NCBI GenBank assembly: GCA_047495785.1
Contig: JBLDXI010000003.1
Coordinates: 3,038,001-3,102,000, forward strand
DNA from: Lepidodermella squamata
Taxonomy: Eukaryota; Animalia; Gastrotricha
Length of the DNA: 64,000 bases
Direction of reading: 5' to 3'
Below are positions 1-45,900 of the stretch, in pieces. Each line of letters starts with the position of its first letter. Position 1 is the first letter of the stretch. Both the position numbers and the translations under genes were made by a program. Under the pieces are notes generated by a model. It had not been told where the DNA came from. It did no database searches and saw only the letters and a list, made by a program, of their open reading frames with translations.

Positions 1-1584
1 AGATTGATGACCCCGCCGCAAGTTAGGCCCTTCGAAGCGGCATTGATCGTGCAAAAATCACCGCCCCAGCCATTCGGGCAGCGGCATTTGACGCAATTTT
101 TAGGGTCTTGATAGCCGCCGTTTTGACAGGGCTGGGGGAGTCTTGTGCTGCTACAAGCAGACGCTGAAAATACGTGAGAGTCGATGATAAGAAGTTTCAG
201 AGGTTAGAAAATGAACACCCGAAAAAAATCAGAAAATTATAGAGAAAAAAATAACTGATCCGATTTCTTGCGATTTAATTTGCAAATTTAAAATCGCAAT
301 TTACAATTAAAAAATTAAAAAATTAAAAAAAATTAAATGGATTTAATAAAATTAATTAAAGTTAAAAATTGACTGTAATCAATTTAAATTTTTTTTTAAT
401 TTTCCGCATCACTTTCTACCTCGATGTCCATCGTAGAAATTTAGGATTGAGAAAAACGGCTAAAAATACATACCGATGCAGTTGTAGTGGTAATTGATGC
501 GTTTAACGTCATTGAATGATAGATAATTCCGATTGCCCAAAGACGTGAGAAATTTGACATCAAGAGGTTCGATGACGCGCTTCTTGCCCCAATAATCGAT
601 CGAGAAGCCGAGCGAATCGTAGTGCATGATTGACTCGAAATCGTACGGCGCGCCGTAGTTGTTCAACTCAGAGGCAGAAACTTTCGCGAAATTCGATTCA
701 TATCCACTAAAATTTATTTGATTTTTACCTGGCTCTAATAAACAAATTAGACTTACGCCATGCAGTTCGCAAGATTCACCCTGATCGCGCTGTCCCGATC
801 GTTGCGCATTTGTTCGTGGTACATACCCAAGGCATGGCCAACTTCGTGAGCAGCAATACCAGCCTATTTTCGATAAATAATTCAAAAATAAAAACGTATA
901 AAAATAAAAACTTACCACAACGCAACCACTTCCAAGAGATATCGTCTGCGTTCTCGAAGAAATTGTTCCTGATTTTTTGAAAATTTAGAATAAAATAAAT
1001 TCGATATCCATTAAAATCGCTAACCGATATATGACCAACATCCGGAGCCTTTATTGAAAGTTATGGAGGGTGTGTTGGCAATGTCGCTAGGTCGGCTGAA
1101 TTCTTGGAACGAAACGCAAGTTGACGAAGACCACATATCGAGGCCTCGGCGGATAATAGCTTTCTCAGCATCACCTGTAATAAATAATATCATAATTAAA
1201 ATAAATTAAATGAATTAAAATTAAAATACTGTGAGTTCCATCGAAAGCGTATTTAATAGGGAAAGGCCATTTTCCGGAAGTAGTTGAAACTCGTTTAGCG
1301 ATTCCGTTCTGAACGCCCATTTCCTCTTCAATTGTTTGCAGGATCATTTTCGCTTGGTCGACAGTGAGTCGCATATCGTCCTCGAACAGGTACTCAGGCG
1401 GCGTATTAACGGGGCCGACTGGGTCGAGAAACGGCCTGGTTATATTATGCTTCTGGAGCATCAGCTGCGAAACCTGGCGCATGATCATCAACGCGTTTAT
1501 TGAGTCTTCAAAGGGCAAATCGCCAACAACTGCAGCAAAAGCCGCATTGCTTGAAAAAGCGAGAAAAATAACCGCCAACAGCAT
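1..1584 (-). CDS. Astacin-family (M12A) zinc metalloprotease with signal peptide, pro-domain, EGF and start of CUB domain; multi-exon, 3' part runs off the window
   Basis: Spliced translation gives [17 protein letters not shown], pro-region [16 protein letters not shown], zinc motif [11 protein letters not shown] (starts 848), Met-turn SIMHY, then [26 protein letters not shown] (EGF) and TCGGVI (CUB start). GT-AG introns keep the frame. Confidence 0.95.
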
Positions 1585-3034: not shown

Positions 3035-4981
3035 CTACGGCGTTAGCGTCGTTGTCGTCGATGTGGTCGCCGTCGTAGTAGTCGATGTGGTCGCCGTCGT
3101 TGTTGTCGATGTGGCCGCCGTCGTAGTAGTCGCGACATCAACCTGCGATTCGCATTCCTTCTTGCCCGCTTGTAGCAGCAGCTGTTTGATCAATTTCCGG
3201 TCAACCTTCGCCCTGATGGTCAAGCTGAGCGGAATAACGCTCAAATCACTGTCAGCATCAGCACGAGACACCGATGAATCACGGCGGCATTTGACCGGCT
3301 TGCGAGTTCGGAAAATGTGGCTTCGATCTTTCGGTTCATGTTTCGGCTTGTGAGTCGACGAGGCAACGGTCGTTTTGCCACCGCTATGACGAGGCTTATG
3401 GGTCTTCTTAACCCAGCCTTCAGGCTTGGCCCGGGTGACAGCATCGGAATCGCCGCTTGATAGTGCTTTTGGACGCTTCGATGATTTTCTGGTCGGATGA
3501 CTGGGCTGGGCGGTCACCTCACGCGGGCAGGTTGTTGTGACCTGATCGCTATCCGGCTTCGTCGGCTCCGCTTCGACCGGGGTCGTTCGCCTTCTGCTTG
3601 GACGCCTCGTGGTCGCGTGCTCACTTTCGACAGGTGCCGGAGTCGTTCGCTTTTTCCATTTCCTCGTCGTCGCCGGCTCGCTTTCGTGGGTCGGGACATG
3701 CTTCGTGGTCAGTTCCGGTTCAGGTAACACGACAGGAGTGGTCCGTTTCTTTGACCTTCTCGTCGGCTCAGCTTCGTGAGTAGGGCCATTTTTCTTAGTT
3801 GGTTCAGCCTTCGGAGTGGTCGCTTCAGGAATCTTCGGCGTTGTAGCAGCTTGAGTCGGTTCCGGTTCAGGAGGCACGTAAGGAGTGGTGCGTTTCTTCG
3901 ATCTCCTAGTCGTAACTGGCTCACTTTCGTGGGTCGGGACATGTTTCTTGGTCGTTTCCACGCACGCTGTGGTCGGTTCCGGCTCAGCTGGAACGTATGG
4001 CGTGGTCCGTTTCTTCGACCTTCTCGTCGTAACTGGTTCGCTTTCGGTCGTTTCAGGTTTGCTAGACACTTCAGGAACCTTTGGCGTAGTAGCAGCTTGA
4101 GTCGGTTCCGGTTCAAGTGGCACGTAAGGTGTGGTTCGTCTTTTCGATTTTCTCGCCGTAACCTGCTCAGTCTCATGGTTCGGATCATTTTGTAATATCG
4201 GTTCCGCCTTCGGTTCCGGTGTCCCTTCAGGAATCTTCGGTGTAGAAGCGGCTTGGGTCGGTTCCGGTTCAGCTGGCTCGTATGGCGTGGTGCGTTTCTT
4301 CGACCTCTTCGTATCAGTCTCAACCTCCGCAGCTGGGGTGGTAGGATCGGCAATGCATTTCGGCGGTTCCGGCCAAGTTCCGGTCGTAGTGTCGCATATG
4401 ATTACAGGGTCTTCGCTATCTGGGTGGAAACCCGGGTCGCATGAGTACGTTACTTTGTCGAACCAGTTGAAGCGGGTGGTGGTGAACGATCGAGTGGCCG
4501 CGTGACCGTTTTCGATATGGGGCGGCTCGCCGCATGATGCTCGGATTACTTTAGCAAAATCTAAATGGGGAATATATTGAAATAATAAATAAAATAATCG
4601 AATTGATTCATTCGTTTCCAGCACTTACGTAATTTACCTTAATCCAAAATATTATTGAAAAATCATTCAAAAAATTTATCAACTCAAAACTCAAATAAAA
4701 TAATACAATTTTAATAACAAATTTTTTAATTAAATATAAAAACTATTAATTATTAATTATTTTGAAAAAATTGGCAACAGTTTGTGTCCGGAAAACTGCG
4801 GTAATTGAAATGTATAAAAAATCGAAATCAAAATCAAACCTTTCGGATGAGGCAGTTTTTCGGGATCTTCGCCAGCTTTTACTTCAAGAAACGAAAATGT
4901 TTTAAAGGTACTTGAATTTTTTTTGTAATTTTGCCTACCTGCAGCTAAAATTGACACCAGAATGACAATGAGCCGGACCAT
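3035..4981 (-). CDS. Secreted single-Sushi protein with long Pro/Thr/Glu and basic tandem repeats and a Thr-rich tail
   Basis: Signal exon MVRLIVILVSILAA, short exon 2, then CGEPPHIENG...CDPGF...W...PPKC followed by repeats like RRSKKRTTPYVPxEPEPTQAATTPK; TAG at 3035. Confidence 0.85.
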
Positions 4982-5628
4982 TGTTTCTAGGGGAATCTTG
5001 AATTTGAAACAGATAAAGTGATTCAGAAAACAAATGTGAAATAATAGTGTAAATCGATGTTGAAAATGACTTCTGTTGGCGTCTGTTGCCTTTTGAAAGT
5101 AAGCGCGACCCTGCCAAAATTGCGTAATATTTTCGTCGCGCCGCACGCGCTCTAATACATGGCGCGTGTCGGAATATTTTTGTCTACCTTTTGGACAATT
5201 TTTCTCCGTTCTTGCTGCTGATATTATTCTTCGTAACACAATGGACATACCGGGATTTGTCACTACAGATCGCGTGGTGTTTTCGATTCTTCAACTCAGA
5301 AAAAGGACCATCAGTTGTTGTTGGCAAAATACGATAACTTAAACCTTCCTTAAAAATCGGTGAATTTTCCAGAAGAGATACATACATCAGATCAGTTGAG
5401 GTAAACCTTCCCAAAAAAATAAGTAAAATTCTGAAATCATCATACTCGACCTTGGCGCTATGAAAATTATCCCCACAAGAATAAATCTTAATTCAAACCA
5501 GGCAACTTTTATTTTTGCGATAACATAGACTTTTTACAATTTCAGCAAAGAAATCAAAGCATTTGATAGTCCCAGACCACAATGATAAGATCCGCAAAAT
5601 GATCCACTTGACCAGACTTGTAAAATGG

Positions 5629-5790
5629 CTATCGACACCTAGCTCGATCGCACGGCGGTCTCTGGCAAATTATGGGCATCGAATATCGTCGGTAGGTATT
5701 ATGTTGTTTCGACGATAGCTTTCGCGTCTTGTAGCGAACCGATAGCTCGATAACGTACTCGGCAAATTTCGGAAACCAGGGATTCGACAT
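5629..5790 (-). CDS. Uncharacterised 53-aa microprotein, copy 1 (MSNPWFPKFAEYVIELSVRYKTRKLSSKQHNTYRRYSMPIICQRPPCDRARCR)
   Basis: ATG-to-TAG ORF conserved in three copies with many synonymous changes; TATAAAA at 5837-5843; AATAAA about 5508-5513. Confidence 0.75.
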   Translation of the reverse strand: MSNPWFPKFAEYVIELSVRYKTRKLSSKQHNTYRRYSMPIICQRPPCDRARCR

Positions 5791-5836
5791 TGTTAGACAC
5801 GAAAATGCTTGTAGGGTGAAACGATTTTCTCAGGTC

Positions 5837-5843
5837 TTTTATA
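5837..5843 (-). promoter_or_regulatory. TATA box of microprotein copy 1 (equivalents at 8364-8370 and 10737-10743)
   Basis: TATAAAAG on the minus strand, with 46 nt between it and the ATG in all three copies. Confidence 0.7.
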
Positions 5844-7119
5844 TCGTATCCTGATTCTACCTAGATGTTATGTTGCCTATGAACCAGTGACAAAAGACAA
5901 ACGCGCAGACGGTCGATGTCTTTAATTGCAAGTAAATTTAATTTATTTAATCGAATTTAATTGCAGCGAACAGCTTTATGACAGATCGCTCGCTCTTTAG
6001 CTTCGTTTTAGCGCTGTCCTACATTTTTTTAATGACAGGTTCTCATAATCCGTAACAACGGAACGTCCACATAGTACGCGGTATAGTTGATATTCACTGA
6101 AACTTCAACTGGAAAATGGTCAATAGATAACTCAGGATATATTTTTTAGCGCCGTCACTTTTAATGACTGATCGCTTCGTTGCACAAGTTATACGGGCAT
6201 CAGACATTTTCGGACGTTTTCGCAAAAAAGTTGTCTTACGACTATCATTTATGGGGCGAAGTCACTCATGCGCCCGGTGACACAGGTTTGCAGTTCAATT
6301 GCAACCATGCGTCATGTGCGAATTTAATTAAGCTGGACAAGGAAATCTAAATACATGTACCCCTTGTCATTTTGCTGATTTTTTCCGATAGAATTCCCAC
6401 CTGTTACAAATGACACTGCGCTTATATTATGCAATATCGGCATGCGCGGGAAAAAGTGCTATTTCCACAACATGAAAACTTCCCGAGATGAATCATCGAA
6501 AAAACGTATTTTCCAAATTAGATGATTGCTCAATGTGGCTGCAGAAGGGCAATCGGCCCCGCTCTTTCGAATGACGATATCCATTTCTAGTTTTTGCACC
6601 CCGGGTGTGTTGGGCATAGCTTGCATTTTTTGCGAGAAGACATGGTTTGCGGACGGCTCCGGTTCGTCTCTTCGCGGCCGCCGCACTTTTGATGCTCGGA
6701 TTTTCAATTTTATTTTTATTTTATTATTTCAGTGAATCCATTTGCGAAGTTGGAGCTGGCAGCTCAACCTTGAACTGCCAAGGCCGTTTACGAATGGGTC
6801 AAATTTGACACATGAATGGTTATTGCAAAAAATTGTCGCCGCTAAGTTTAACGATGCGATGTATTCATTTTGCTGGGCTAGCATTCATTTTGTGCGTGAA
6901 TTCGGCTTCAAAAATATGAAGGAATGAGTGGGATAATTGGCACCCGTGTGCTAGACTAAGAACGAATAACTCTACACTTCGCTATTTTCTACCTGTTTAT
7001 GATTGATTTCGCTGGCAGTTCAATCCCGCTGGTTCACGCCGAAAACCAAATTTAGGGGAACCAAATTTCAAATCTTGGCACCAAACGCAAGCGTCTGAAA
7101 TTATGTTAACGCTGCCGGA

Positions 7120-7600
7120 TACCGACAATGCTCACACGCATATGGAAGCCTTGAAAACCCGTTTCCAAAACCGTTCTACGGCGAATCGACTGCTATTGCG
7201 TAATCAACTGCTAACAACGAAATGCCGAGAGGCCTAGGTATCCACATTCAAAATTGAAAGACGATTAGGGATCGGCTGAATGCTATCGAGTCGCATGTCG
7301 ATGAGAGCGACATGATCGTGGCTGTGTTGAATAGCCTACCCGCGAGTTTCAACACACTAATTCAGTCTATTCAAATGGTCAAGAATGTGACATTGGATGA
7401 CGTGGAAGCGGCGCTGGCGTCGACGACTGACGTTGAAGCAAGGCAAAGGGCGAGATGTGGCTTTGAAAGTTGGGCGATTCAAGCACTTCAATAAGGGTCC
7501 TAACACAACAATAATCGTTCTGGGAAGATTGGTCCATGTTACAACTGTGGTATGATGGGTCATCTTCAAGATAGTCGCCGAAAACCAAGGAAACAAAGAT
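7120..7600 (+). mobile_element. Degenerate Ty1/copia gag remnant (UBN2/Retrotran_gag_2-like plus decayed zinc knuckle)
   Basis: EALKTRFQNRSTANRLLLRNQLLTTK, IRDRLNAIESHVDESDMIVAVLNSLPASFNTLI, GPCYNCGMMGH; interrupted by stops and frameshifts; no pol found. Confidence 0.8.
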
Positions 7601-7842
7601 CGTCCGATCCACCAAAAAGTACAAGTAAACCAAAGGCGAAGAAAGAAGTTCAAGATCGAAGACTGAACCTTAATAAAATTCCTTTGTGCGAAACTTGCAA
7701 TTTTATCACCTTGGCGCGTTAGTGCGGGTGCAACGAATCAACTCGCCACACCCTATACAAAGGTTGAGGAATTTGTCACTAAAGATCGCGTAGTCATCAA
7801 CCAGCAAACTGAATCATTGAAGCGATTCTTTAATCGCAGAAT

Positions 7843-8995
7843 AAAGGACCATTAGTTGCTGTTGGCAAAAAACGATACCTTAAAAGTCGGTGACCTTTCC
7901 AGGTGAGATGTGAGATACATACCAAGTTGAGGTAAACTTTGCCAAAACATACATAAAAATAAGCAAATTCCGAAATAATCAGACTCGGCCTTGGCACTAT
8001 GGAAATTATCCCACAAGAATAAAACGCGACATCATAGTTCAAACCAGGCAAATTTTATTTTGCGATAAATAACTTTTTCGGTTTAAATAAAAGTATTTCA
8101 TAGTTCCAGACCACAATAATAAGATCCGTGCTTGACCAGATTTGTAAAATGGCTATCGACACCTAGCTGGATTGATCGGCGGTCTCTGGCAAATTATGGG
8201 CATTGAATACCGCCGGTAGATATTATTATGATGTTTCGACGACAGCTTGCGAGTCTTGTAGCGGACTGAAAGCTCGATAACGTACTCGGCAAATTTCGGA
8301 AACCAGGAATTCGACATGTTTAGAGGCGAAAATGACTGTTGAATGAAACGATTTTCACAGGTCTTTTATATCGTTTGTCAGGGATGTCCGGGATGTCCGG
8401 ATTCTGCCTAGATCTTATATCGCCATTAAACTAGTGACAAGAGACGCAGACGTTCGATGTAGAATTTAATTGCATCGCTCAGCTTCATGACAGATCGCTC
8501 TCTTTTTTGCTTTAGGGCGGAAACATACATTTTTTCAATGACAGGTCTTATGAGTTATGCATATAAGTAAAAACGAGAACGTGTACAATGACGCAGGTGT
8601 CGATATTTTCCGACAAATGAAGGGGTATGAGTGGTCAATTTTCTGAGAAATAGACCATTAACCGTAAAACCCCTTTTGCGACTCATTTACTAATTCAATG
8701 AGTTTTCTGCTGTCAATTGTGAGTGACTGATCGCACCATTGCACAAGTTGCCTGCATCAGACATTTTCTAGCGGACGACCTCAAATAAAGGCTGTCCTAT
8801 ATGACTAAACTATTTTTGCTGATGTCACTCATCACCTGATTCGCCAATGTACACTGTTTTGTATAAATGGTAAACATGCGTCATCTGTGAATTTAAGCAG
8901 GACAAGGAAATCAAGATACCTACGTCTCGAGTGACTTCCCGTCATGTTGTCCAACATTTTCCGATAGAATTTCCAGCCTTAACCAATGACACGGC
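7843..8995. repeat. Copy 2 of the ~1.1-kb direct duplication
   Basis: Colinear with 5300-6420. Confidence 0.85.
8153..8317 (-). CDS. Uncharacterised 54-aa microprotein, copy 2 (MSNSWFPKFAEYVIELSVRYKTRKLSSKHHNNIYRRYSMPIICQRPPINPARCR)
   Basis: Intact ORF; differs from copy 1 by synonymous changes (CTA/CTT, TCG/TCA, GTT/GTC, ACG/ACT, CGA/CGC) and one in-frame codon indel. Confidence 0.75.
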   Translation of the reverse strand: MSNSWFPKFAEYVIELSVRYKTRKLSSKHHNNIYRRYSMPIICQRPPINPARCR

Positions 8996-9394
8996 GCTTC
9001 TATGAAACACCCTACGTAGGACAATGGTGTCGGATAACTTTGATATATGCGGGGGATTTTTAGGTATTCATCTGAAATCTAAGGGGGAATCAACATCCCA
9101 CGGTTTATTCAAGCTGACTTTCCGGTGTTAAATATGGACAATTATGGGCAGAAAATAAACTTGAGAGCAAAATTTATATCTGAACTTTTGCTAGTAAATA
9201 AATTCTAGTGATATCTGGTTTATCGATTCCGTTAATTTTACCGATAATCGATCGATGTGGTTTTGACTCTTTTAAGGAAATCTACGTCAGCTGGAATTTA
9301 ATGCTGAACTATTAGTGACAAGAATTATTGTGCAAAAGCCCTTCTCATCCCTACTGTTCAAATATCGTTCCCAAAAATATAAAATATAGACTCA

Positions 9395-10135
9395 TTATTT
9401 GAGAGCAAAATTTATATCTGAATTTTTGCTAGCAAGTTTTCGAGTTACAGTATCTGAGCAAAATGTTTGGCACACCCATGAAATCGGTGTTTTTGACGTA
9501 TTTAGTCCAATTTTCGATCCCAATCAAAGATTTAATTCAATATTTAGCTCGAGCTCTCTCCGCCGAGTATTTCGATACCAAACATGCATGAAATTCAGTT
9601 GGTGTGAGCTCTTGGGAGATGATTAGCGATAATATGCTATGGCTTGATTTATTGATAAAACCAACCGATTTTTATCGATTTCCGTTAGGGATATCGATTA
9701 TTTTCAACAGACTAATCAACGATTTCACTTGATGCTAATTTTCAATCCTCCGCTTGGCCATGATTATCATTGCTGCAATTAAATATGCTAGAGACCGCAT
9801 AACCATGCCATAAACCATGTCGATATTTGACACAAATCACTTGCGATTCAGGCAATTATCGATAATATATGTCACGAGCTATGGTGGGCACCATAAGAAT
9901 GAACCATCATCTCATACGTCAAAATACTCACCGTAGCTTGCTCGAGCTTAATCTTCGAATAAAGATCTGTATAAGATGTAAATTTGGATTCTTTGGATTA
10001 ATACAATGAAAATACCGCATTTTAAAGGGTGTGCCAAACATTTTGCTCGAATACTGTATTTCTGGATTATCGATTCACAGTTTTATCGATATAGAATTCA
10101 GCAAAAATTCACATATAAATTTTGCTCTCAAATAA
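9395..10135. mobile_element. Small inverted-repeat element (outer), interrupted by a second MITE
   Basis: TTATTTGAGAGCAAAATTTATATCTGAATTTTTGCT at the left end and its near reverse complement ending 10135; a related uninterrupted left part lies at about 9161-9250. Confidence 0.65.
9448..10056. mobile_element. Tc1-like non-autonomous element (inner)
   Basis: TIRs CAGTATCTGAGCAAAATGTTTGGCACACCC / GGGTGTGCCAAACATTTTGCTCGAATACTG; TA on both flanks. Confidence 0.8.
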
Positions 10136-10516
10136 TTCGCAATCAACAACGGCCTAGATAAGTCTGTTCTGCTCCGCAGAATATTCGATATCACCATGAA
10201 ATTTGCCAATAATCGATCAATCGATAACCGATATCAGCATTAATCGATTTACGCGTCAACAAATTATAAAATTATACAAAATATATCACGATTTTGTTTA
10301 TCAATTTTATTAGCAATTTACAGAACAAAGGTGCATTTCGAATTTGTCAGACTTAGCTTTTGGCTTTATATCATAAGTTTATATAGATGGTTGATAACAT
10401 ACAGAGAAGTTTACACTTTTTACGAATTTTACAAAATTTGAAAGGAGTATTTTTTGTAGTTTCACACGACAATCCGGCAATATTTTACTATTAGGTATAT
10501 TTCACTTTTGAGACAG

Positions 10517-10690
10517 CTAGAGAACTCGGCACCTAGTTCGATCGCACCGCGTTCTCGAGCAAAGAGTAACGGGCATTAAATGCCGCCGGTAGATGTTAGT
10601 ATGGTGTTTTGAGGACAGCGTGCGCGTCTTGAAGCGAACCGAAAGCTCGATAAAGTACTCGGCAAATTTCGGAAACCAAGAATTCGACAT
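10517..10690 (-). CDS. Uncharacterised 57-aa microprotein, copy 3 (MSNSWFPKFAEYFIELSVRFKTRTLSSKHHTNIYRRHLMPVTLCSRTRCDRTRCRVL)
   Basis: Intact ORF; flanks are more diverged, but frame, ATG and TATA spacing are conserved. Confidence 0.75.
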   Translation of the reverse strand: MSNSWFPKFAEYFIELSVRFKTRTLSSKHHTNIYRRHLMPVTLCSRTRCDRTRCRVL

Positions 10691-12367
10691 ATTTACAGAC
10701 GAAAATGGGGCTAAAGTACATACAACGATTTCAGCCTTTTATAGTAGATTCTCAGAGAGATAATGTCCCGACAACCTACTTTATATTAGGTTACCAGGGA
10801 GTGTCTAGGGTCTAGGCCGCAAAAGGTCGAAGAATTATAACGGACCAATTGAAATCACGTGCAAAACGTTCTCTTTGGTATATAGTTCTATCCTTTTTCT
10901 AAATGGCTGATTCTAATAATCGTACGATTGGACATATCAATCAATCAACCAATCGAATGTGTCATATGTCTCGATATTTTTCAGGTGCTTTTCGCAAATG
11001 CAACCGTCATGGACTGATAACTGTTTCGCGATTCGTCTCTAAGTTTGAAAATTCAACGGTGTTTTCGTTATTGTGACTCTCATTTACTTGTGGGCGGTCT
11101 CTGATGCTATACACTATATCGGCGTTGAATAACTCGTCGAATTCAAGCTTGATAATTGCGATAGCTTCAAGGTGATAAGTGGCTTGAAAGATGTCGCGTG
11201 AATGAAGAGGCGTGTACATGTTATTTAAAATACCCACATTGCAAGTAACTGTGTTGGCGTCACTTACTTTATTCGATAATAAACGAGGGCTATTTCGATT
11301 ACAGAAAAAGTATTGCGCAGTTGTACGCTATCTCGAGTCCTGGACAAAGAATTGGAATCACCTGCCGAGCGACGTTTTGTTTCACCGATCACCGACGCGT
11401 AAACAACCCAATAAAATTTTAATTTTTTCGAACTTGGAAAAACAACTGACGGATTCGTCCTCAACATTCGACTAAACATTTTCGAGGATACCTTGGGGGC
11501 GGGTAATTTTGGACAAAATCATGGTGAGCCCCGATTAATTGGTAAAACTGTGTGATTTTTCGATTTTTACCTGACTTTTGGCTGAAGTTGGACCATTAGC
11601 GGGCTATTCGGACACCCTCATTGGCATTGTGAATTTTTTGTTTTTTTCCTGAACGTGAAGTCAAATTAGGAAAAACAATTATAAGCAGATGGCGCATCAT
11701 CTGGTTTCCGAAGAAATTGAGAAAAACACATTTTCGCCTGAACTTCAGGTGAATGCCCTGCAAAAACCAATCGTTGGATTATCATTTTTCTTTCGATAAA
11801 TGAGAGAACAGCGCTCTTAGGATACCCATGCCAATTTTCGTCTCAAAATGATCATTTTTTGGGATATGAGAGGGGGTCCCAAGTCGACATTTGAGTTACC
11901 TTGCTTGTAACATTTCTTAAAAATCAAGTATTGTTTCAATCACCTTGAGACTTGCGTCATTCGAAAGCTCAAGAGCTTTAGGAATCCCCTTGCCTGGATA
12001 TTTTTGTTTCAAATTTCAGAGTTGATTAAAGGTGATTTTTAACCTAAATGATTACGCTGATCGGGCTCAAAAATCAATCGATATGTGATGGACTGATGAG
12101 CCAAATTATTCAACAAGAAGCGCGAAAATCCACGATAGTCTGTAGTTTATTGAGAGATTGATACGCTTGAGTTGCACAATCTTAAACATGGTAATCTAGC
12201 AGCTATACCACGGTACAACATCAAGTAACAAGAAGACGCGATTGCCAAAAAAATATATCATCAAAATTATCATTTTCCTTGCATATTAATATCGTAAGAG
12301 TGAAGCAAGTCTTTTAGTGAAAAATATTTAAATTTCAAATTTTCCAGAATTTCCCGCCATTTTTGTT

Positions 12368-13955
12368 TTATTTCACGCATGACGGCATAGCAGTCCAGGT
12401 GAGCGTGTCTGGCCGGCAAACGATGACCTCGCGGCCTACCAGCGTGTAGCCGTCGAAGCACTGATAGAACACCTTATCAGCGATACTGCTCATCTGCGTG
12501 ATGTCGAAAGTTGAGTTTCGAATACGGCCCTGGCTCAACAGCGGCGCCATGCCGCACGTTGTCTGCTCAGTATCAGCCGTGTTATTGCCACTGCCCGGGA
12601 TGCATCGCGGTTCCGGCGTCCAGACGCCATCGAACAGGCAGACGATCGTCGCTTTGCCATCGGGGATGTAGTAACCCGATTGGCAGGCGAAGGCAACTCG
12701 ATCGCCGTCCATTGCTATTCGATTAGCTGGGAAGGTTTGGTTGAAAATGACCGCATTCGGCACAACAGGAATCGGTCCGCAATTGATGAGCTGGCATTTA
12801 GGGACTGACGACCATTTCAGGTCAGGATTGCAGCGAATCGTGCTGCTTTCGTTGACAATTCGATAGCCGCTTCGGCATCGATAGCGCACCGTTGAAAACG
12901 GCTGGCTTCGGGTTCCGACGAAAGTTTGGTCCTGGACAAAGCCGTTCTCGACAATAGGCGCCGGGCCGCAAGAAGCTGAGAAAAAATTCATTTTATTTAC
13001 GAAAAATTAAATATTATCAATTTTTTTAATTCGGAACGTAAAATCAATTTCCCCAAATTTTTCGAAATTTAATTTCAATTTTTTCGAATTATTTTCTAAT
13101 TTGACCTAGATTATGACAACTCTTACCATCTGGTACGCATTTTGGCGGAATCGGCCAGGTTCCATTCGGGTTGCACGTGATGGTCGGATCCGTCCATTCA
13201 GAATGGAAACCCAGGTCGCAAGCATAGGTCACCTTGTCGAACCAGGTATAACGGGTCGTAGTATAAGACCGAGTCGCCGGGTACCCGTTGTCGATTTGCG
13301 GCGGATCGCCACACGCCGTGATGATCAAACTTCCATATTCTGCGAGAAATTAACAACAAAATAAAAAATTCTGAATTGTTCAAGGCATCTTACGGCAGAC
13401 TGGTTTAGGATTAGACCAGGTCCCATTTGGTTGGCAGACAATTGTTTCGGTCGAAGTCGCCGTCAAGCCGATCGCACACGTGTAGATCACGGTCGATCCA
13501 ACCTGGCTTTGATCGAGCGGGAAATTAGTTTTTACCTGAGCGGTACGCACATCAGGCGCCGGGCCGCATGTGGTTACGCAAAGGGGCAAGGCAGTCCATT
13601 GCATTGTGTCCCCATCGCAAGTTATCGTAGGATCGCCTATAATGATGAAACCGTCGTAGCAAGCATAGGTCGACTGGTCACCCTCCACGCTTGATCGGTT
13701 GTTGAAAGTTGTTGTAACCACCCTGGCGTGTTGGATGTAAGGCGTTGCTCCACAAGTGATTGGAACTGTATTTTATTAAGGCGGATTATTTAATTATCTT
13801 TTGAAATTTCACAAAAAATTACGTCTCAAGCGGCGATCCGTGAACGGGTTCAAGGCGTAACGGCGAGGGCCTTGAGTCGAAGGGCGGCTTGTATAGAATT
13901 GCGCCTCAACAACGGCAACAGTTAAGACGGCTGCCAAAAGGCATGCGCGTAACAT
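12368..13955 (-). CDS. Secreted protein with 6 Sushi/CCP domains
   Basis: Signal MLRACLLAAVLTVAVVEA; four exons; six C-x-x-x-P...Y-x-C...G...C...W...P-x-C modules; TAA at 12368. Confidence 0.88.
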
Positions 13956-17600: not shown

Positions 17601-19567
17601 TCATTAGATAAATAATTAACAAAATTTGAAGTCAAATTAAAAATGCAAACGCTGTGGAAAATATTGGTACATAATAGAAAACAAATAACGAAATTCGCGG
17701 GTGTTAATTAAACGCGGAAAAAACACGCCGCAATATTATTTATATATACTATCTCAGCGCAGCGCAATGTAAGCTGCTCGAGTACTATCGTGTTCCACGT
17801 TATAATGCCGCGTTAAAATGCGCTATACTAAATAGCAGCAGCGTTAAGGCATAAGGTATACGCGTAATTTTTACGTGTTCCTTAGGCTAAAAGGAAAATA
17901 GCTGCCTTAATGTTAACCATGGTTCCATGGTGTAGCGGTTAGCACTCTGGACTCTGAATCCAGCGACTCGAGTTCGATTCTCGATGGGACCTTAATTTTT
18001 CAATTTCCCTTTTCCTTTTTTTGAATAATTTTTCGGATAATTAAATTATTTTTCGAAAATAAATTAATGGCAACATCAAGAAACAAGGCAGAACAAAACG
18101 AGCAATCGTCAACAAATTTAGCATTCGTAAATAAAACAAATTTAGCAAATATTATTAAGTGAGATATACAAGCTGAATTTCGTGTTGGCACCGGTGCTGA
18201 ACCTTAATGATGTTAATTAATCAGCTGTTAGGTCTATATGTTTTTTTGCACAAAATCAGACTTACGAGTTGTGGTCGTTGTTGTCGGGGCTAAAATGTTC
18301 AAAAATATAATTGACTAGCTACTCGGAACTGAGCTTACGAGGTTCGGTTGTAGTCGTTGTAGTAGTAGTGGGTCGGAAATATCTAGGCGGTGTATTCACT
18401 ATTCTGTTAGTGACAGAACCACCGGAGGACCTCTCGCAGGTAGGTACCGGTGACCAGCCGTGAATCGACTCATCACACCAAATGCGATCACTTGTCCCAG
18501 CAACCAGGGCGAAACCAGGTAAGCACTGATACTGGACAATATCGTTGAACTTGCTGTTCACCCCGCGGAACGACTGCATCGTGATATTGGCTCCAGCAAC
18601 GGTGGGAGGGGCGCCGCATGAGCCGACACAAGTTGGAACTGGCTGCCACGAAGAATCAGCTTGGCAAAACGAGGGTGCATCGGTTGATAAAATGTAGTGT
18701 TCGTAACACTGATAGGTCGCTTGATCACCACCGTAAAACAAATCAGGTGATCCCGAAGACGAATCGGCCTGGAAAAACATCCAATTTTTAATTTTTTTAA
18801 ATTTCAATTAAATTAATATTAATGTTAAATAAATTAAATGTAATTAAATTAATAAAAAATTCGGAAAAATTAAATTAAATCAATTCCAATTTTTTTCGAA
18901 TTTTTTATGTTACCGTATTGATGTAACCCATTTCGATTTGAGGAGGCGGGCCGCATTGAATGTTCGGATCCGAAGCCGGTTGAATCGAAACGACCAGAGC
19001 CGGGTTTCGAGCCGACGGTTTCAGGGCCAATTCACCGCCAACGCGCAGCTGGTTGACCTCCTTTAAATTGCTAATCGACATGAAGCCGACGTAGGTCTCA
19101 AACTTTTCAGCCGCTTTAACGTTATCGATGCCATACGGCACAACCAGCTGATTTTGCGGGACATCCCATCGATCGTAGAAAATTCCGATCACGTGACCTG
19201 CTGTGACCTTCAACCTCGTATCGCCGCTTAACTGCATCGTCGTCCAGCTGGTCTTCGATTGCGATTGCGCGACCTCAATCGTTATGTAATTAACTAATTG
19301 GTAGTAATTAGTCGAACCCTGTTGGAACGGGCGGAACGTGCCGAGGTAGAACTTGTGTTGCCCGGCCCCGGTCGCGAAATTGATGAAACTGATCGAGCCA
19401 ACCTGGCCCTCGCAACCTAGCTTCATCCATGAAAAAATTTGCAGAACCCCTGTCGCTAATTGATACGTTGAATTAGCCTCAGCGGCTGTTAAACCAACTC
19501 GACACCGTTCGACCGCATAGTTGGATTTAACAAAGCAAAAAACAATTAAAATTAACGATTTTAACAT
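14664..19567 (-). CDS. Secreted protein: unknown ~170-aa N-terminal domain plus about 11 Sushi domains with Thr/Pro linkers
   Basis: Signal MLKSLILIVFCFVKSNYA; N-domain WMKLGCEGQV...GIFYDRWD...TYVGF; Sushi exons down to ...GSWAVQFECRQARSGR*. Confidence 0.85.
17921..17992 (+). tRNA. tRNA-Gln(CTG), intronic
   Basis: Acceptor GGTTCCA/TGGGACC, anticodon arm CTGGA-CTCTGAA-TCCAG, T arm TCGAG-TTCGATT-CTCGA, downstream T run. Confidence 0.95.
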
Positions 19568-23000: not shown

Positions 23001-24600
23001 CTGAGAATTGTGGTTCTACATTTTTCCTATTTCATGTTTCATGCACTTACTAAATTTCCTTAAACAAATGATGCATCCTATGAACCTGGGATTTTTTAAA
23101 TAAGCTACCTGTAACCCTCAGGAATTTAAGAAAATTACATTATAGTTCCTCAAATTTAAGGCTGCCCTGTGAACCGAGGAAGAGTTTTTCGGAGACTGGG
23201 GTCCAGTACATCGCATTATGGCTGAAATAATAAACTGAGTTGGGACAAATAAGGTCAATATCGTTAGCGGCGCGCCAAAACAACCACTTAGATGACTCAT
23301 TCGATAGTACTTTTGGTCGCCTAACGTAATAATGAAGTACGTTAGGCTTTTTGAGCACCGATTTTTCATCTATCGAACGTACTTTCTTTAAAAAATCTAT
23401 AAATAGTAAAGTGGTTGTTTTGGCGCGTCGCTAACGATATTAGTCCTAAGCACTCTCTAAGTCTCGGGCTTCGGATTCTCATCAGAGCCATTTTCTCTCT
23501 GATACCCAGGAAAGCCGATTTCAAATGCTACGAAATGATCATGTTCTCTGCTGTAACAAAAACTAGGTTTAGTATTACGTCCAAGTTCTAGTTCAAGAAG
23601 ATTTTAGCAAAAACAGAATAAAAAAGATTTACCAGAGGTGGGGTTCGAACCCACGCGGGATTACTCCCATCAGATCTTAAGTCTGACCTCTTAAACCACT
23701 CGAGCACTCTGGTCGGGTGAATACTAAGCCTTTCAGAAGTTTTTTCAATCTTCTCTCAGATGGAACCCATGAACTCTCACAAGCTATTTCAGCCTAATAG
23801 TCAGGAATCTAGTTCAGGCATCAATTAGGTTCAGAAAGGTCCATTCCAAGTTGAAAGATTAATAAAGAAATTTAACCTGATAAATCGGGGACACATTTCG
23901 GACTCTCCGACCAGTTGCCATCCGGTAGGCAGGTAATAGTATTCCGCCCAACTGTATTGAAGCCGCTCAAACATTCGTACCGAACCCGATTACCAGCTTG
24001 ACCCGTTGAAGTCGTAAAAGTTCGCGTGACCTCCCGAGCATTCAGTAATATTGGAGGCTCGCCGCAGGACGGCGAAGCAAGTTGACATTTAGGCATATCC
24101 GTCCACTTGCCATTACCTTAATCGATAGATATGAATTTAAATCGATAAATTTAGGAAATCACAAACAGACTTTGGCATCTGATCGAATTGCTTTTTCCGA
24201 CAAGAATGAACATGCTTTCGCAATTGAAGGTGATAACGTCCCCACTAGAAGCGCGATCTGCTTCGACATGGATGGTACTCGTAATGATGCGCCCATTTTG
24301 AAGGCCAGTAATTTTGGGACATTTCACGAATTGGCAATCGGGCAATTCTGACCAATCTCCCGTCGACTGGCAAGTTATGCTATCAGGGCTAGGCTGGTAC
24401 CCGTTTCTACACGCGTATTTAACAATGTTGCCGGGTTCACTCGACCGTGTCGATGTGTAATTCTGCCATACGATATCAGCGCCTTCGATGACCGGTGGCG
24501 AGCCGCAAGATGAGATAGGTAGGGCTGAAATCGCCGGTAGCCATAGCAACGCACCTGATAACAACAGCCAAATAGCCCGTGCTTGGTCAAGCGTATCCAT
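20091..24600 (-). CDS. Secreted protein with about 11 Sushi domains; the last two carry an extra Cys pair and are separated by a Thr-rich linker
   Basis: MDTLDQARAIWLLLSGALLWLPAISA signal; Sushi exons; terminal modules contain CRVEPC and CRSPPC; TAA at 20091. Confidence 0.85.
23253..23446. mobile_element. PIF/Harbinger (Tourist-like) MITE in intron
   Basis: GG...CC termini, ~38-bp TIR AATATCGTTAGCG(G/A)CGCGCCAAAACAACCACTT, TAA on both flanks. Confidence 0.7.
23630..23713 (-). tRNA. tRNA-Leu(TAA), intronic
   Basis: ACCAGAG/CTCTGGT acceptor, TCAGA-CTTAAGA-TCTGA anticodon arm, long variable arm, GTTCGAAC T loop. Confidence 0.93.
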
Positions 24601-42900: not shown

Positions 42901-45900
42901 CGTTCCATCAGCCGCACACTATAAGAAAAAATGAACAATATTTGATTTTTGTTAGCCAATCCATTGAAACGATTTTCAGAGTCTGAATTAAGGCAGCATA
43001 TTATTTTCAATTTTCAATTATTTTGTTATTGAGAGGCGATGTCTGTCCATTCAGTTAAACATGTCTCAAACAATAATAATTCAAACAAATTATGTGGCTC
43101 GAGAAATTCCTGCAAATTCACTAATTTTTAATTTTAAATGATTGTAGGAAGACATTTCTTGAGAATGATAACTGCGAAAGAATGGCTTTACGTTAGGAAG
43201 TAACCTCTCTTATCGCAATGGTGGGAGAACAAGTCAGGATGGCCGAGCGGTCTAAGGCGCCAGACTCAAGATCTGGTCCTCGAAAGAGGGCGTGGGTTCG
43301 AACCCCACTTCTGACATGATTTTTTATTTTTCCTTTTTTTATTTTTATTTTTATTTCAAATTTCAAATACAACTCAAATGCGATTTCTCATATACACCGG
43401 GTCATAGACAGGTCATAGGAAAATCGCGCACATAAAATCAAAACGTCGCGCAAAACAGAAAGGAGTACCCTAATTAAACAATGCGCGACGCTTTTAATTA
43501 TTATCTTTCAACTCTTATTTCAAATTTTGAGCGTAAGAATCAATTAATAAATAATAAATTACTCAATTTTGATTAAAATTAACTTCGTTTATGGCAATGC
43601 ATACCATGCATACCAAACTACTGCCAATGATGAAAAATTCCACTAACCTGAACGTAGTTATTTCGCGTCGTCAACAAGTAGCCTTCCAAGCATTCATACA
43701 TGACCAAACTGCCGCCAACCGGTGTTGTATCGTAACTTTTGTAAATAACAGCCGAATTCGCAACAGACGGCGGTGCCAAGCACAGAGTCTGCGGAATATC
43801 CGACGCTTTCAAACACCTCGGCAAAGTCGACCAGCGGCCCGTGTCCTGGCAAACCGCCGTCGAAGGCACGGTATTCACGACAAAGCCTTCATTACACCGG
43901 AAGAAAACTCGCGAACCAACAACCGACTTGGCATTCGAAAAATCAGAATAAAGCGCCTGGCCGTTGTCGATTTGAGGCGCGGCGCCACATGTCGACACGC
44001 TTGACCGCACACAGCGCGGGGCTAGCGACCAGCCAGACGCGCCGCACGTCACAACGGGCGATCCTTCAATCCGCCACGATTCGGCGCATTGAAACGTGAT
44101 TGTATCACCCAATTTCGGCACGGAATTCATCGCGGTTTGCGTTGAGATGAACCCGTTAGTTACCACGGGTAGTACCGAGCATGACGACGACCGGGTACAA
44201 GTAGGAATCGCCGACCATTTCAACGGGCTGGACGAGCAAACAACCTGCCGATCGCCGTTCATTTGATAACCGTCGTTACACATGAAAAACACGGTATCGC
44301 CCAAACCGCCGTTTGACGGCGTCCCGGTGATGTATTGGGTGTAGATAACCCGGCCGTTGTCGATGGTCGGCGTCGCCCCGCATGAATCTACCTTATTCGA
44401 GCCGATACCGCCAGCGGCTGAGGCTTGAATCCCGTCTAGCGGCTCGCAGTTCGCGGTTTGCGACCAACTGCCGTTAGCCTGGCAAGTTATGACAACATAA
44501 GCCGCGTCCTGGACTTGGAAACCCGGTTCGCACTGGTAAAAGGCCTTATCATCGGGGATACTGGTCGCGTCAAACGTTTTCACGGTTAATTTCGCGTTTC
44601 TCAAGTTAGGCGCAGCGCCACATCCCGCCGGGATACAAGTCGGGGCTAAAGTCCAAGTTCCGGCTGGTTTTTGGCAGGTAACGGCGTTGATTCTCGGATC
44701 AGCCAACGCGAAGCCTAATTTGCATAGGTAAATGACTGACGTCGCGTTGACCGAGGCGATGAAGCCGTTTTCGATACTCGGCGGGGGTCGGCATGGGGCG
44801 AAGTTAATGGCTTGGATCGATCTGGCGCAAATCGGTAATTTCGACCAGCCATCCGGGGTGCAAATTACCGTATCAATCGAGGTGACATCGAATTGATACC
44901 CGGAGTTGCATTGGTACTGCAAAATAGTTCCGATCGGGTATTTTTCGAGACTCGACGAAATTTGGGTGACTAGCAAGGCGTTAGCAACGGGCTGAATCGG
45001 GCCGCAAGATGAGTCTTGGTCTAGATTCAGCTGTTCAATCGGGGCTGCGAGTGGCAGCTCGCGTAGAGGCTGGTTTATAACTTTTTGGGTTGTGGCCGGG
45101 GTGGTTTTCGGTGTGGTTGAGGTTGGCTTGACGACTATTACTGGCTGGGCGTCGATGTTCATCCGATTTCCGACGTCGTTGTTGTCATTTGCGGCGTTGT
45201 TTGTGCTTCGGGAGCAACTCGGCATCACGCTCCAAGTACGGGATGTTTCGTCACCTGAGCATGTCACAGTCTCAGGGCCAACCAAAGCGTAACCCGTATC
45301 ACAAGAATCTGCAATAAAAGTTGAATAAATCTGGGAAATTTTGTGAAATTTCAAAAACAGTTATTAAAAAAGCTTTTTGGGTGTACCAATTCTAGACCCT
45401 AAATTTAGGGACTCTCATTTTAAAGTTTCTGATCCTGTTTCCAGGTGTTTTCTTTGTTTGCGCGACTTTGGGGCACGCTTTATCAAGAAACTGGATGAAT
45501 TTAGAGCAAGAACACCGGAACCTCAATTTTAACGCAAGTGATGTTAAGTACCGGATGCAGAGCTATTGATCTACATAATAATTTTCTCGCGCCGTCGAAC
45601 CATTTTTTGCAAATGCTAAATATAGTAACAAAATCTTCGATGTATAGTGATTTGCTGTAAATCTAAAGCTAAAAATAGAACATGTTGCTATTTTTGGCAC
45701 TGCAAAAAATGGTTCGACGGTGCGAGAAAATTATTATGTAGATCAATAGCTCTGCATCCGGTACTTAACATCCCTTGTTTTAACGATGACGATTTTCCTT
45801 CACTTTGAAATTTTCTTAAAATCAAATTTGAACTTCAAACTTACAATAAAGAGTATCTCCTGGTCCTCCGAAGCGTGAATTTCCGCTCTTGAAAACAGAC

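Follow-up and report, generated by a model that had tools for sequence, protein, structure and literature searches.

The window analysed here is a 64-kb stretch of the Lepidodermella squamata genome (contig C3, positions 3038001–3102000, in a eukaryotic assembly of 121.2 Mb and 151 contigs), whose minus strand carries three short open reading frames (ORFs) with a common peptide motif, MSN(S/P)WFPKFAEY(V/F)IELSVR(Y/F)KTR...YRR...MP...RCR. The original prediction had described three intact minus-strand ORFs with this motif, each preceded by TATAAAAG ending 46 nt ahead of its ATG, and translation (53, 54 and 57 amino acids) and motif scanning bore out both statements: TATAAAAG occurs only three times in the whole window, both strands counted, always on the minus strand and each time ahead of one of the ORFs. 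The copies stand in tandem at a spacing of 2.4–2.5 kb, each with the same layout of TATA motif, ORF and AATAAA. We consider it likely that the three copies form a tandem part of a family of ten intronless, lineage-restricted microprotein genes, whose products would combine a docking helix with a basic tail. The elements of the locus are as follows.

5629–5790, minus strand: candidate microprotein gene, copy 1; coding sequence of 53 amino acids plus stop (ORF translation), 89% identical to copy 2 in amino acids
8153–8317, minus strand: candidate microprotein gene, copy 2; coding sequence of 54 amino acids plus stop (ORF translation)
10517–10690, minus strand: candidate microprotein gene, copy 3; coding sequence of 57 amino acids plus stop (ORF translation)
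5836–5843, minus strand: TATAAAAG, putative TATA box of copy 1, 46–53 nt upstream of the ATG (motif scan)
8363–8370, minus strand: TATAAAAG, putative TATA box of copy 2, ending 46 nt before the ATG (motif scan)
10736–10743, minus strand: TATAAAAG, putative TATA box of copy 3, ending 46 nt before the ATG (motif scan)
5508–5513, minus strand: AATAAA, putative poly(A) signal of copy 1, 115 nt past the stop
8054–8059, minus strand: AATAAA, putative poly(A) signal of copy 2, 93 nt past the stop
10306–10311, minus strand: AATAAA, weaker (distant) poly(A) candidate of copy 3, 205 nt past the stop
5375–6427, unstranded: duplicated block of unit 1, partner of 7912–9003 (blastn, 74% and 67% identity)
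7912–9003, unstranded: partner block in unit 2 (blastn)

The assembly was searched in six frames, first with one peptide and then with profiles, and holds exactly ten intact members, four each on contigs C3 and C17 and two on C31; the family size of three originally proposed was therefore an undercount. The fourth C3 member lies 246 kb from the three window copies. All ten members begin with an ATG one to four codons ahead of an invariant Trp-Phe, have a small residue in second position (S, G, A, T or P) and run for 47–66 codons to the stop, with a common start, M-x(1-4)-WFxK[FL][AV][ED]xx[IM]E[LI][SE]VR[FY]K[TN]R, that gives way to a variable basic tail. A profile of the first 27 columns scored the ten members at 59–70 bits, and the next match anywhere in the genome reached at most 17 bits. 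At the DNA level, an 801-nt query returned four matches in 121 Mb, all from the C3 clade. Because DNA matches number only four genome-wide, the unit is not a repeat element or transposon, and the contrary case raised in the original prediction, a high-copy transposon fragment, does not apply to a family of ten protein-level members. One further copy (C3:3287679–3287738; L021:2820–3140, minus strand) lies at a distance of 7 kb from the fourth C3 member. It has retained the ATG-TCG-AAT start, an intact 3′ half (MPVILCLITPCDRDTWCRY) and the beginning of the 3′ untranslated region (3′UTR), but since an insertion has scrambled its 5′ half and its TATA box is absent, we regard it as a decayed paralog. 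The family thus appears, from its gene copies, to undergo birth and death.

The flanking motifs recur well beyond the window. TATA[AT]A was found 43–62 nt ahead of the ATG in seven of the ten members (within 95 nt in nine), and TATAAA is the most widely common 6-mer within 200 nt upstream, occurring in five of six lineages. AATAAA follows the stop by 35–205 nt in eight members, and the same number (8/10) have an A at position −3. Within the C3 clade, the block TATAAAAG-N(4-7)-GAAATCGTT and the motif CATTTTCG, ~14–20 nt ahead of the ATG, have been kept despite decay of the other flanking DNA. Inr-like motifs downstream of the TATA box vary, with no consistent initiator across members, and because of this inconsistency we make no claim of an initiator; no consistent splice acceptor was found among the members either. 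As judged from these elements, the members look like independent, TATA-driven mini-genes.

Two other conserved stretches lie around the window copies. A block of ~25 nt immediately after the stop (GCCATTTTACAAGTCTGGTCAA; 5604–5628 and 8128–8152, minus strand) is common to copies 1 and 2, the fourth C3 copy and the relic, and not found at copy 3; it may be a 3′UTR element. Copies 1 and 2, but not copy 3, are preceded at a distance of 360–690 nt by a second block (6151–6427 and 8709–9003, 67% identity); no convincing common ORF was seen in it, and it could have a regulatory role or simply remain from the duplication.

In the DNA alignment, which took in 250–300 nt of flank, copies 1 and 2 share 90% identity over the ORF and 80–85% over the flanks. 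Copy 3 shares 83–84% with them over the ORF, 89–91% over its first 75 nt and 52–56% over the flanks. In blastn comparisons of the ~2.5-kb units, ~1 kb was common to units 1 and 2 (the ORF with ~250 nt downstream and ~640 nt upstream), and unit 3 could be aligned to them only over the ORF and 17 nt upstream. Gaps within the ORFs measure 3, 3 and 6 nt in the DNA alignment, i.e. whole codons, as had been claimed. The accompanying claim that differences in the core are largely third-position synonymous held for copies 1 and 2 (3, 3 and 10 differences at the successive codon positions) but not against copy 3 (7, 8 and 12, and 8, 9 and 10); over the first 25 codons, synonymous and non-synonymous changes among the pairs of window copies stand at 6:1, 4:3 and 4:4.

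We compared non-synonymous and synonymous proportions (pN/pS) with Nei–Gojobori counts on a protein-guided codon alignment, with totals taken over three close pairs that are independent in the phylogeny (w1/w2, w3/C3d and C17b/C17d) and evaluated with a Fisher test. The ratio was 0.19 for the head, i.e. the first 25 codons (p=1e-4), and 0.44 for the whole ORF (p=3e-4), so that the expected value well below 1 for the ratio of non-synonymous to synonymous divergence was recovered in the conserved head. Between contigs, synonymous sites are saturated and head amino acid identity is still 56–62%; W5, F6, K8, E15, V18, R19, K21 and R23 are invariant in all members and E11 is present in nine of the ten. 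The head is therefore under purifying selection. The tail drifts almost neutrally in sequence, and the original prediction had not noted this difference between the N-terminal helix and the tail. Tails cannot be aligned between clades, yet all stay open, and they comprise 24% Lys plus Arg (K+R; 77/318 residues) versus a background of 15% from comparable random open frames (p=9e-6) and 3% Asp plus Glu versus 6.5%. Constraint on the tail, as far as these counts indicate, is compositional, not positional.

AlphaFold2, run with the ten-sequence alignment, predicted a single helix (residues 5–37) with block means of the predicted local distance difference test (pLDDT) of 81 for residues 1–10, 91 for residues 11–20 and 50–61 beyond; in this model the N-terminal helix is the one confident element and the tail is disordered. 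The N-termini (MSNSWFPKFAEY and similar) place K8 and E11 within the first 11 residues, and the heads (e.g. WFPKFAEYVIELSVR) follow the consensus WFxKΦΦExxΦEΦxVRΦKTR, an amphipathic helix of ~20 residues. On a helical wheel, the invariant and near-invariant residues gather on one side (K8, E11, E15 and R19, spaced i+3/i+4, together with T22, I14, V18, W5 and L16), and the opposite sector is purely hydrophobic and conservatively variable (F/L9, A/V10, V/F/L/C13 and Y/F20). With a hydrophobic moment of 0.34–0.44 and a mean hydrophobicity of −0.03 to 0.16, the helix is amphipathic and neither transmembrane nor strongly membrane-seeking. All ten members are basic (isoelectric point (pI) 9.9–11.7, net charge +6 to +11); the three window peptides, which had been described as basic, have a pI of 10.2–10.9 and a net charge of +9, and the predicted absence of a signal peptide likewise stood in the window copies, where sequence inspection found no hydrophobic signal-like N-terminal stretch. 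Tails are rich in Ser, Thr and Pro and polybasic. Some 10 residues past the helix, around R36, the sole invariant tail residue, seven of the ten members (five of six lineages) carry the motif R[RK]x[ST]. A homodimer prediction for residues 1–40 scored 0.02 against a mark of 0.32, which counts neither way for self-association.

Searches for relatives outside this genome support the original view that the family is an unrecognised one, with no relative in Pfam or the other libraries. Two members gave no Pfam family at E≤0.01, and with all ten the best E values were 0.1–0.16, each to a different domain of unknown function in a single member and none to a transposase or reverse transcriptase. A 10-sequence profile had no match among PDB sequences at E≤10. 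A word-indexed search of 5.8 billion proteins with the alignment returned no relative, and the sole match of a HMMER profile against 1.84 billion representatives (P0001) was spurious, being a low-complexity protein of SWFVGFAQSLIHVSVR repeats. The ESM Atlas, JGI metagenome contigs and IMG/VR viral contigs likewise yielded no relative, nor did a full-text search of papers for the peptide motifs. The FAM98A gene near member C31a led to two very gene-dense ENA metagenome contigs of a distant relative at 55% identity (ERZ27332993 k141_413825, L032; ERZ23486764 scaffold_10772, L033), on both of which the gene order FAM98A, TFIIE-beta, InaF-motif protein and PLAT-repeat gene is kept as on C31; the two contigs can serve for genome comparison at other loci. 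For FAM98A itself no NCBI relative exceeded 46% identity among the matches listed, which fits a poorly sampled phylum. A 785-amino acid ANF-receptor ORF beside the fourth C3 copy, tried as a second synteny anchor, had no match at E≤1e-30, too strict a cut-off.

The family belongs to no described family, and the phenomenon it would exemplify, lineage-restricted microprotein genes, is already known. Taxonomically restricted small-ORF genes (animal micropeptides of <100 amino acids) likewise consist of one small ORF under a promoter of its own and encode a helix and a disordered region; they too escape standard annotation and have multiplied by tandem duplication. No sequence relation to the described microprotein families was found for the present candidate genes. 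PKI (PF02827), the heat-stable inhibitor of cAMP-dependent protein kinase, is a small, acidic protein with an N-terminal amphipathic helix, a linker and an Arg-Arg-x-x site bearing the pseudosubstrate Ala (RRNAI type). Our family resembles it in small size and in the order of amphipathic helix and Arg-Arg-x-x site, but its spacing from helix to Arg-Arg is longer, its proteins are strongly basic, its site has Ser or Thr (RRYS, RRHS, RRSS, RRTT, RRCT) instead of Ala, and no member matched the PKI family in Pfam up to E=5. Phospholamban has a cytoplasmic N-terminal amphipathic helix followed by an RRAS(T) kinase site, and a C-terminal transmembrane helix that defines the type. The likeness of our family to phospholamban, sarcolipin and sarcolamban (~50 amino acids, an N-terminal amphipathic helix and a kinase-type site after it) ends at this last feature, as the members have no transmembrane segment, charges interrupt every hydrophobic run and the tails are 24% K+R and rich in Ser, Thr and Pro. 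The RII-binding helix of AKAPs follows the pattern [AVLISE]xx[AVLIF][AVLI]xx[AVLI][AVLIF]xx[AVLISE]; FA-xx-VI-xx-SV resembles its spacing, but S/E17 and K21 break the pattern in every register.

Further candidate functions were set aside. Calmodulin binding (1-5-10 or 1-8-14 spacing from W5) was dropped because two conserved acidic residues, E15 (invariant) and E11 (9/10), lie in the helix. A secreted peptide of the antimicrobial or neuropeptide type would call for a signal peptide, and inspection of the N-termini, made without running a predictor, revealed none. C-terminal lipidation is not claimed because its support is too weak: a Cys lies within the last four residues in seven of the ten members but in three of six lineages, and a CaaX-like end (CRVL) occurs in copy 3 only.

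That the genes form a real protein-coding family is, in our judgement, very likely given the selection and layout described above. Each gene would be its own small RNA polymerase II unit, with a TATA box ~50 nt ahead of the ATG and a very short leader. The N-terminal helix would dock onto a protein partner that is itself conserved; conservation of its charged face suggests that it recognises a specific protein surface and does not merely lie on a membrane. The basic tail would bind non-specifically, by electrostatics, to a polyanion (nucleic acid, acidic lipid or an acidic protein surface), and the RRx(S/T) site could act as a switch for a basophilic kinase. The product would thus be a small phospho-regulated adaptor or regulator, not an enzyme, a membrane-spanning protein or a secreted peptide. 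This docking-adaptor model is tentative, and we hold it to be possible rather than probable even if the family is protein-coding. An extension of it, which we consider a long shot, sees the family as gastrotrich-specific, phospho-switchable docking microproteins in which the charged stripe binds one partner (e.g. a kinase regulatory or docking domain), RRx(S/T) is a substrate of the pathway and the ten tails lead to different polyanionic sites (membrane, RNA, chromatin); if true, this would make them a new class of mini-anchoring proteins.

Several observations weigh against the reading of a lineage-restricted, functional microprotein family. None of the ten sequences was present in a 15-billion-protein collection by exact look-up, no relative in another organism appeared in any library searched, and the two contigs of the distant relative, the one syntenic locus inspected, carry no family member, at the spot corresponding to the C31 locus or elsewhere. 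The conservation evidence comes from paralogs inside one genome, the pN/pS of the tail (0.67, p=0.08) is not distinguishable from neutral, and an RRxS/T motif in an Arg/Ser-rich tail is weak evidence of a kinase site. The functional model was drawn from sequence features alone. Small ORFs are rarely called, and the libraries may lack records of this genome or of close relatives, for which reason the absence of relatives is only moderate evidence for lineage restriction; from these searches the family is probably restricted to this lineage.

The shortness of the ORFs and the position of copies 1 and 2 within a ~1-kb duplicated block would also suit conserved DNA or RNA that does not code for protein, or chance ORFs that were copied in a recent segmental duplication. 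We find this very unlikely, since the head shows a synonymous excess (p=1e-4), indels are whole codons, distant paralogs keep the peptide, the start position and the open frame despite saturated synonymous sites, flanks fall to 52–56% against 83–84% in the ORF, and no Rfam match was obtained. The ORFs might instead be alternative first exons or upstream ORFs of large neighbouring genes: downstream of the window copies follows a same-strand Sushi/Pro-Thr-repeat gene, its signal-peptide exon starting at 4981, and member C31a ends ~60 nt ahead of a same-strand PLAT-domain ORF. Every member has its own stop codon, however, followed by AATAAA in eight of ten and preceded by TATA[AT]A 43–62 nt upstream of the ATG in seven of ten, the three tandem copies repeat this layout, the ORFs contain no conserved site that would be plausible as a splice donor, and member C31b is antisense between PLAT exons. 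The neighbours of the other members (a PLAT-repeat gene, Na/Ca exchangers and the ANF-receptor ORF) are unrelated to one another and to the Sushi genes of the window, which further argues against the members being exons of their neighbours, and we rate this explanation as quite unlikely. An origin from a transposon or virus, as fragments or accessory ORFs, could account for copies on three contigs, some of them in or beside large genes, and for the one decayed copy, but with only four DNA-level matches, all in the C3 clade, no flanks common to the distant members, no terminal repeats seen, no IMG/VR match and no transposase or reverse transcriptase match in Pfam for the ten members, this is highly improbable.

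A different view accepts the genes as real and takes the proteins for basic sperm or chromatin proteins of a protamine-like kind, with the tail as effector and the helix for self-association. Tails rich in Arg, Ser and Cys that keep their charge and not their sequence are in line with it, as are tandem duplication, TATA promoters and short leaders. In protamines, K+R lies far above the ~24% of these tails (77/318), the strongest constraint falls on a helical head that is amphipathic and not basic, and nothing resembling the H1, HMG or protamine families came up in the Pfam scans; we did not place the family in the protamine class and consider this view unlikely. That the helix is constrained in its sequence and the tail in its composition shows which residues to mutate first. 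Gastrotrichs are almost unexplored molecularly and standard annotation drops ORFs of such a size. The family would offer a clean, experimentally tractable example of lineage-restricted microproteins and, if expressed, could be used to study the origin of new small proteins and how they acquire partners.

In the window, the three copies are located between two same-strand genes with Sushi repeats, the upstream ORF ending with its stop at 12368. The downstream gene (3035–4981, minus strand) was modelled from sequence only as two exons, with an ATG at 4981, a donor after 4939, an in-frame join at 4560 and its end at 3035. Its first exon (4939–4981, MVRLIVILVSILAA) is signal-peptide-like and is followed by a 378-nt intron; the second encodes one Sushi domain, then approximately eight Pro/Thr-rich repeats of 41–43 amino acids and a poly-Thr/Ala/Ser end. 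Each of these repeats includes the dibasic, furin-like motif RRSKKRTTPY(V)P, and the product may be mucin-like or resemble a repeated pro-peptide. An astacin exon lies at 460–918 (minus strand). From 12368 to 63596 (minus strand), a long series of Sushi/CCP-repeat exons with very short gaps and hints of cEGF and HRM domains makes up one or more giant complement-control-type genes. An Rfam scan of the window detected three transfer RNA (tRNA) genes only, and nothing at the microprotein ORFs:

17921–17992, plus strand: tRNA Gln-CTG (Rfam)
23630–23713, minus strand: tRNA Leu-TAA (Rfam)
43233–43316, plus strand: tRNA Leu-CAA (Rfam)

All three are interspersed with the Sushi exons and apparently lie within the genes concerned or between them.

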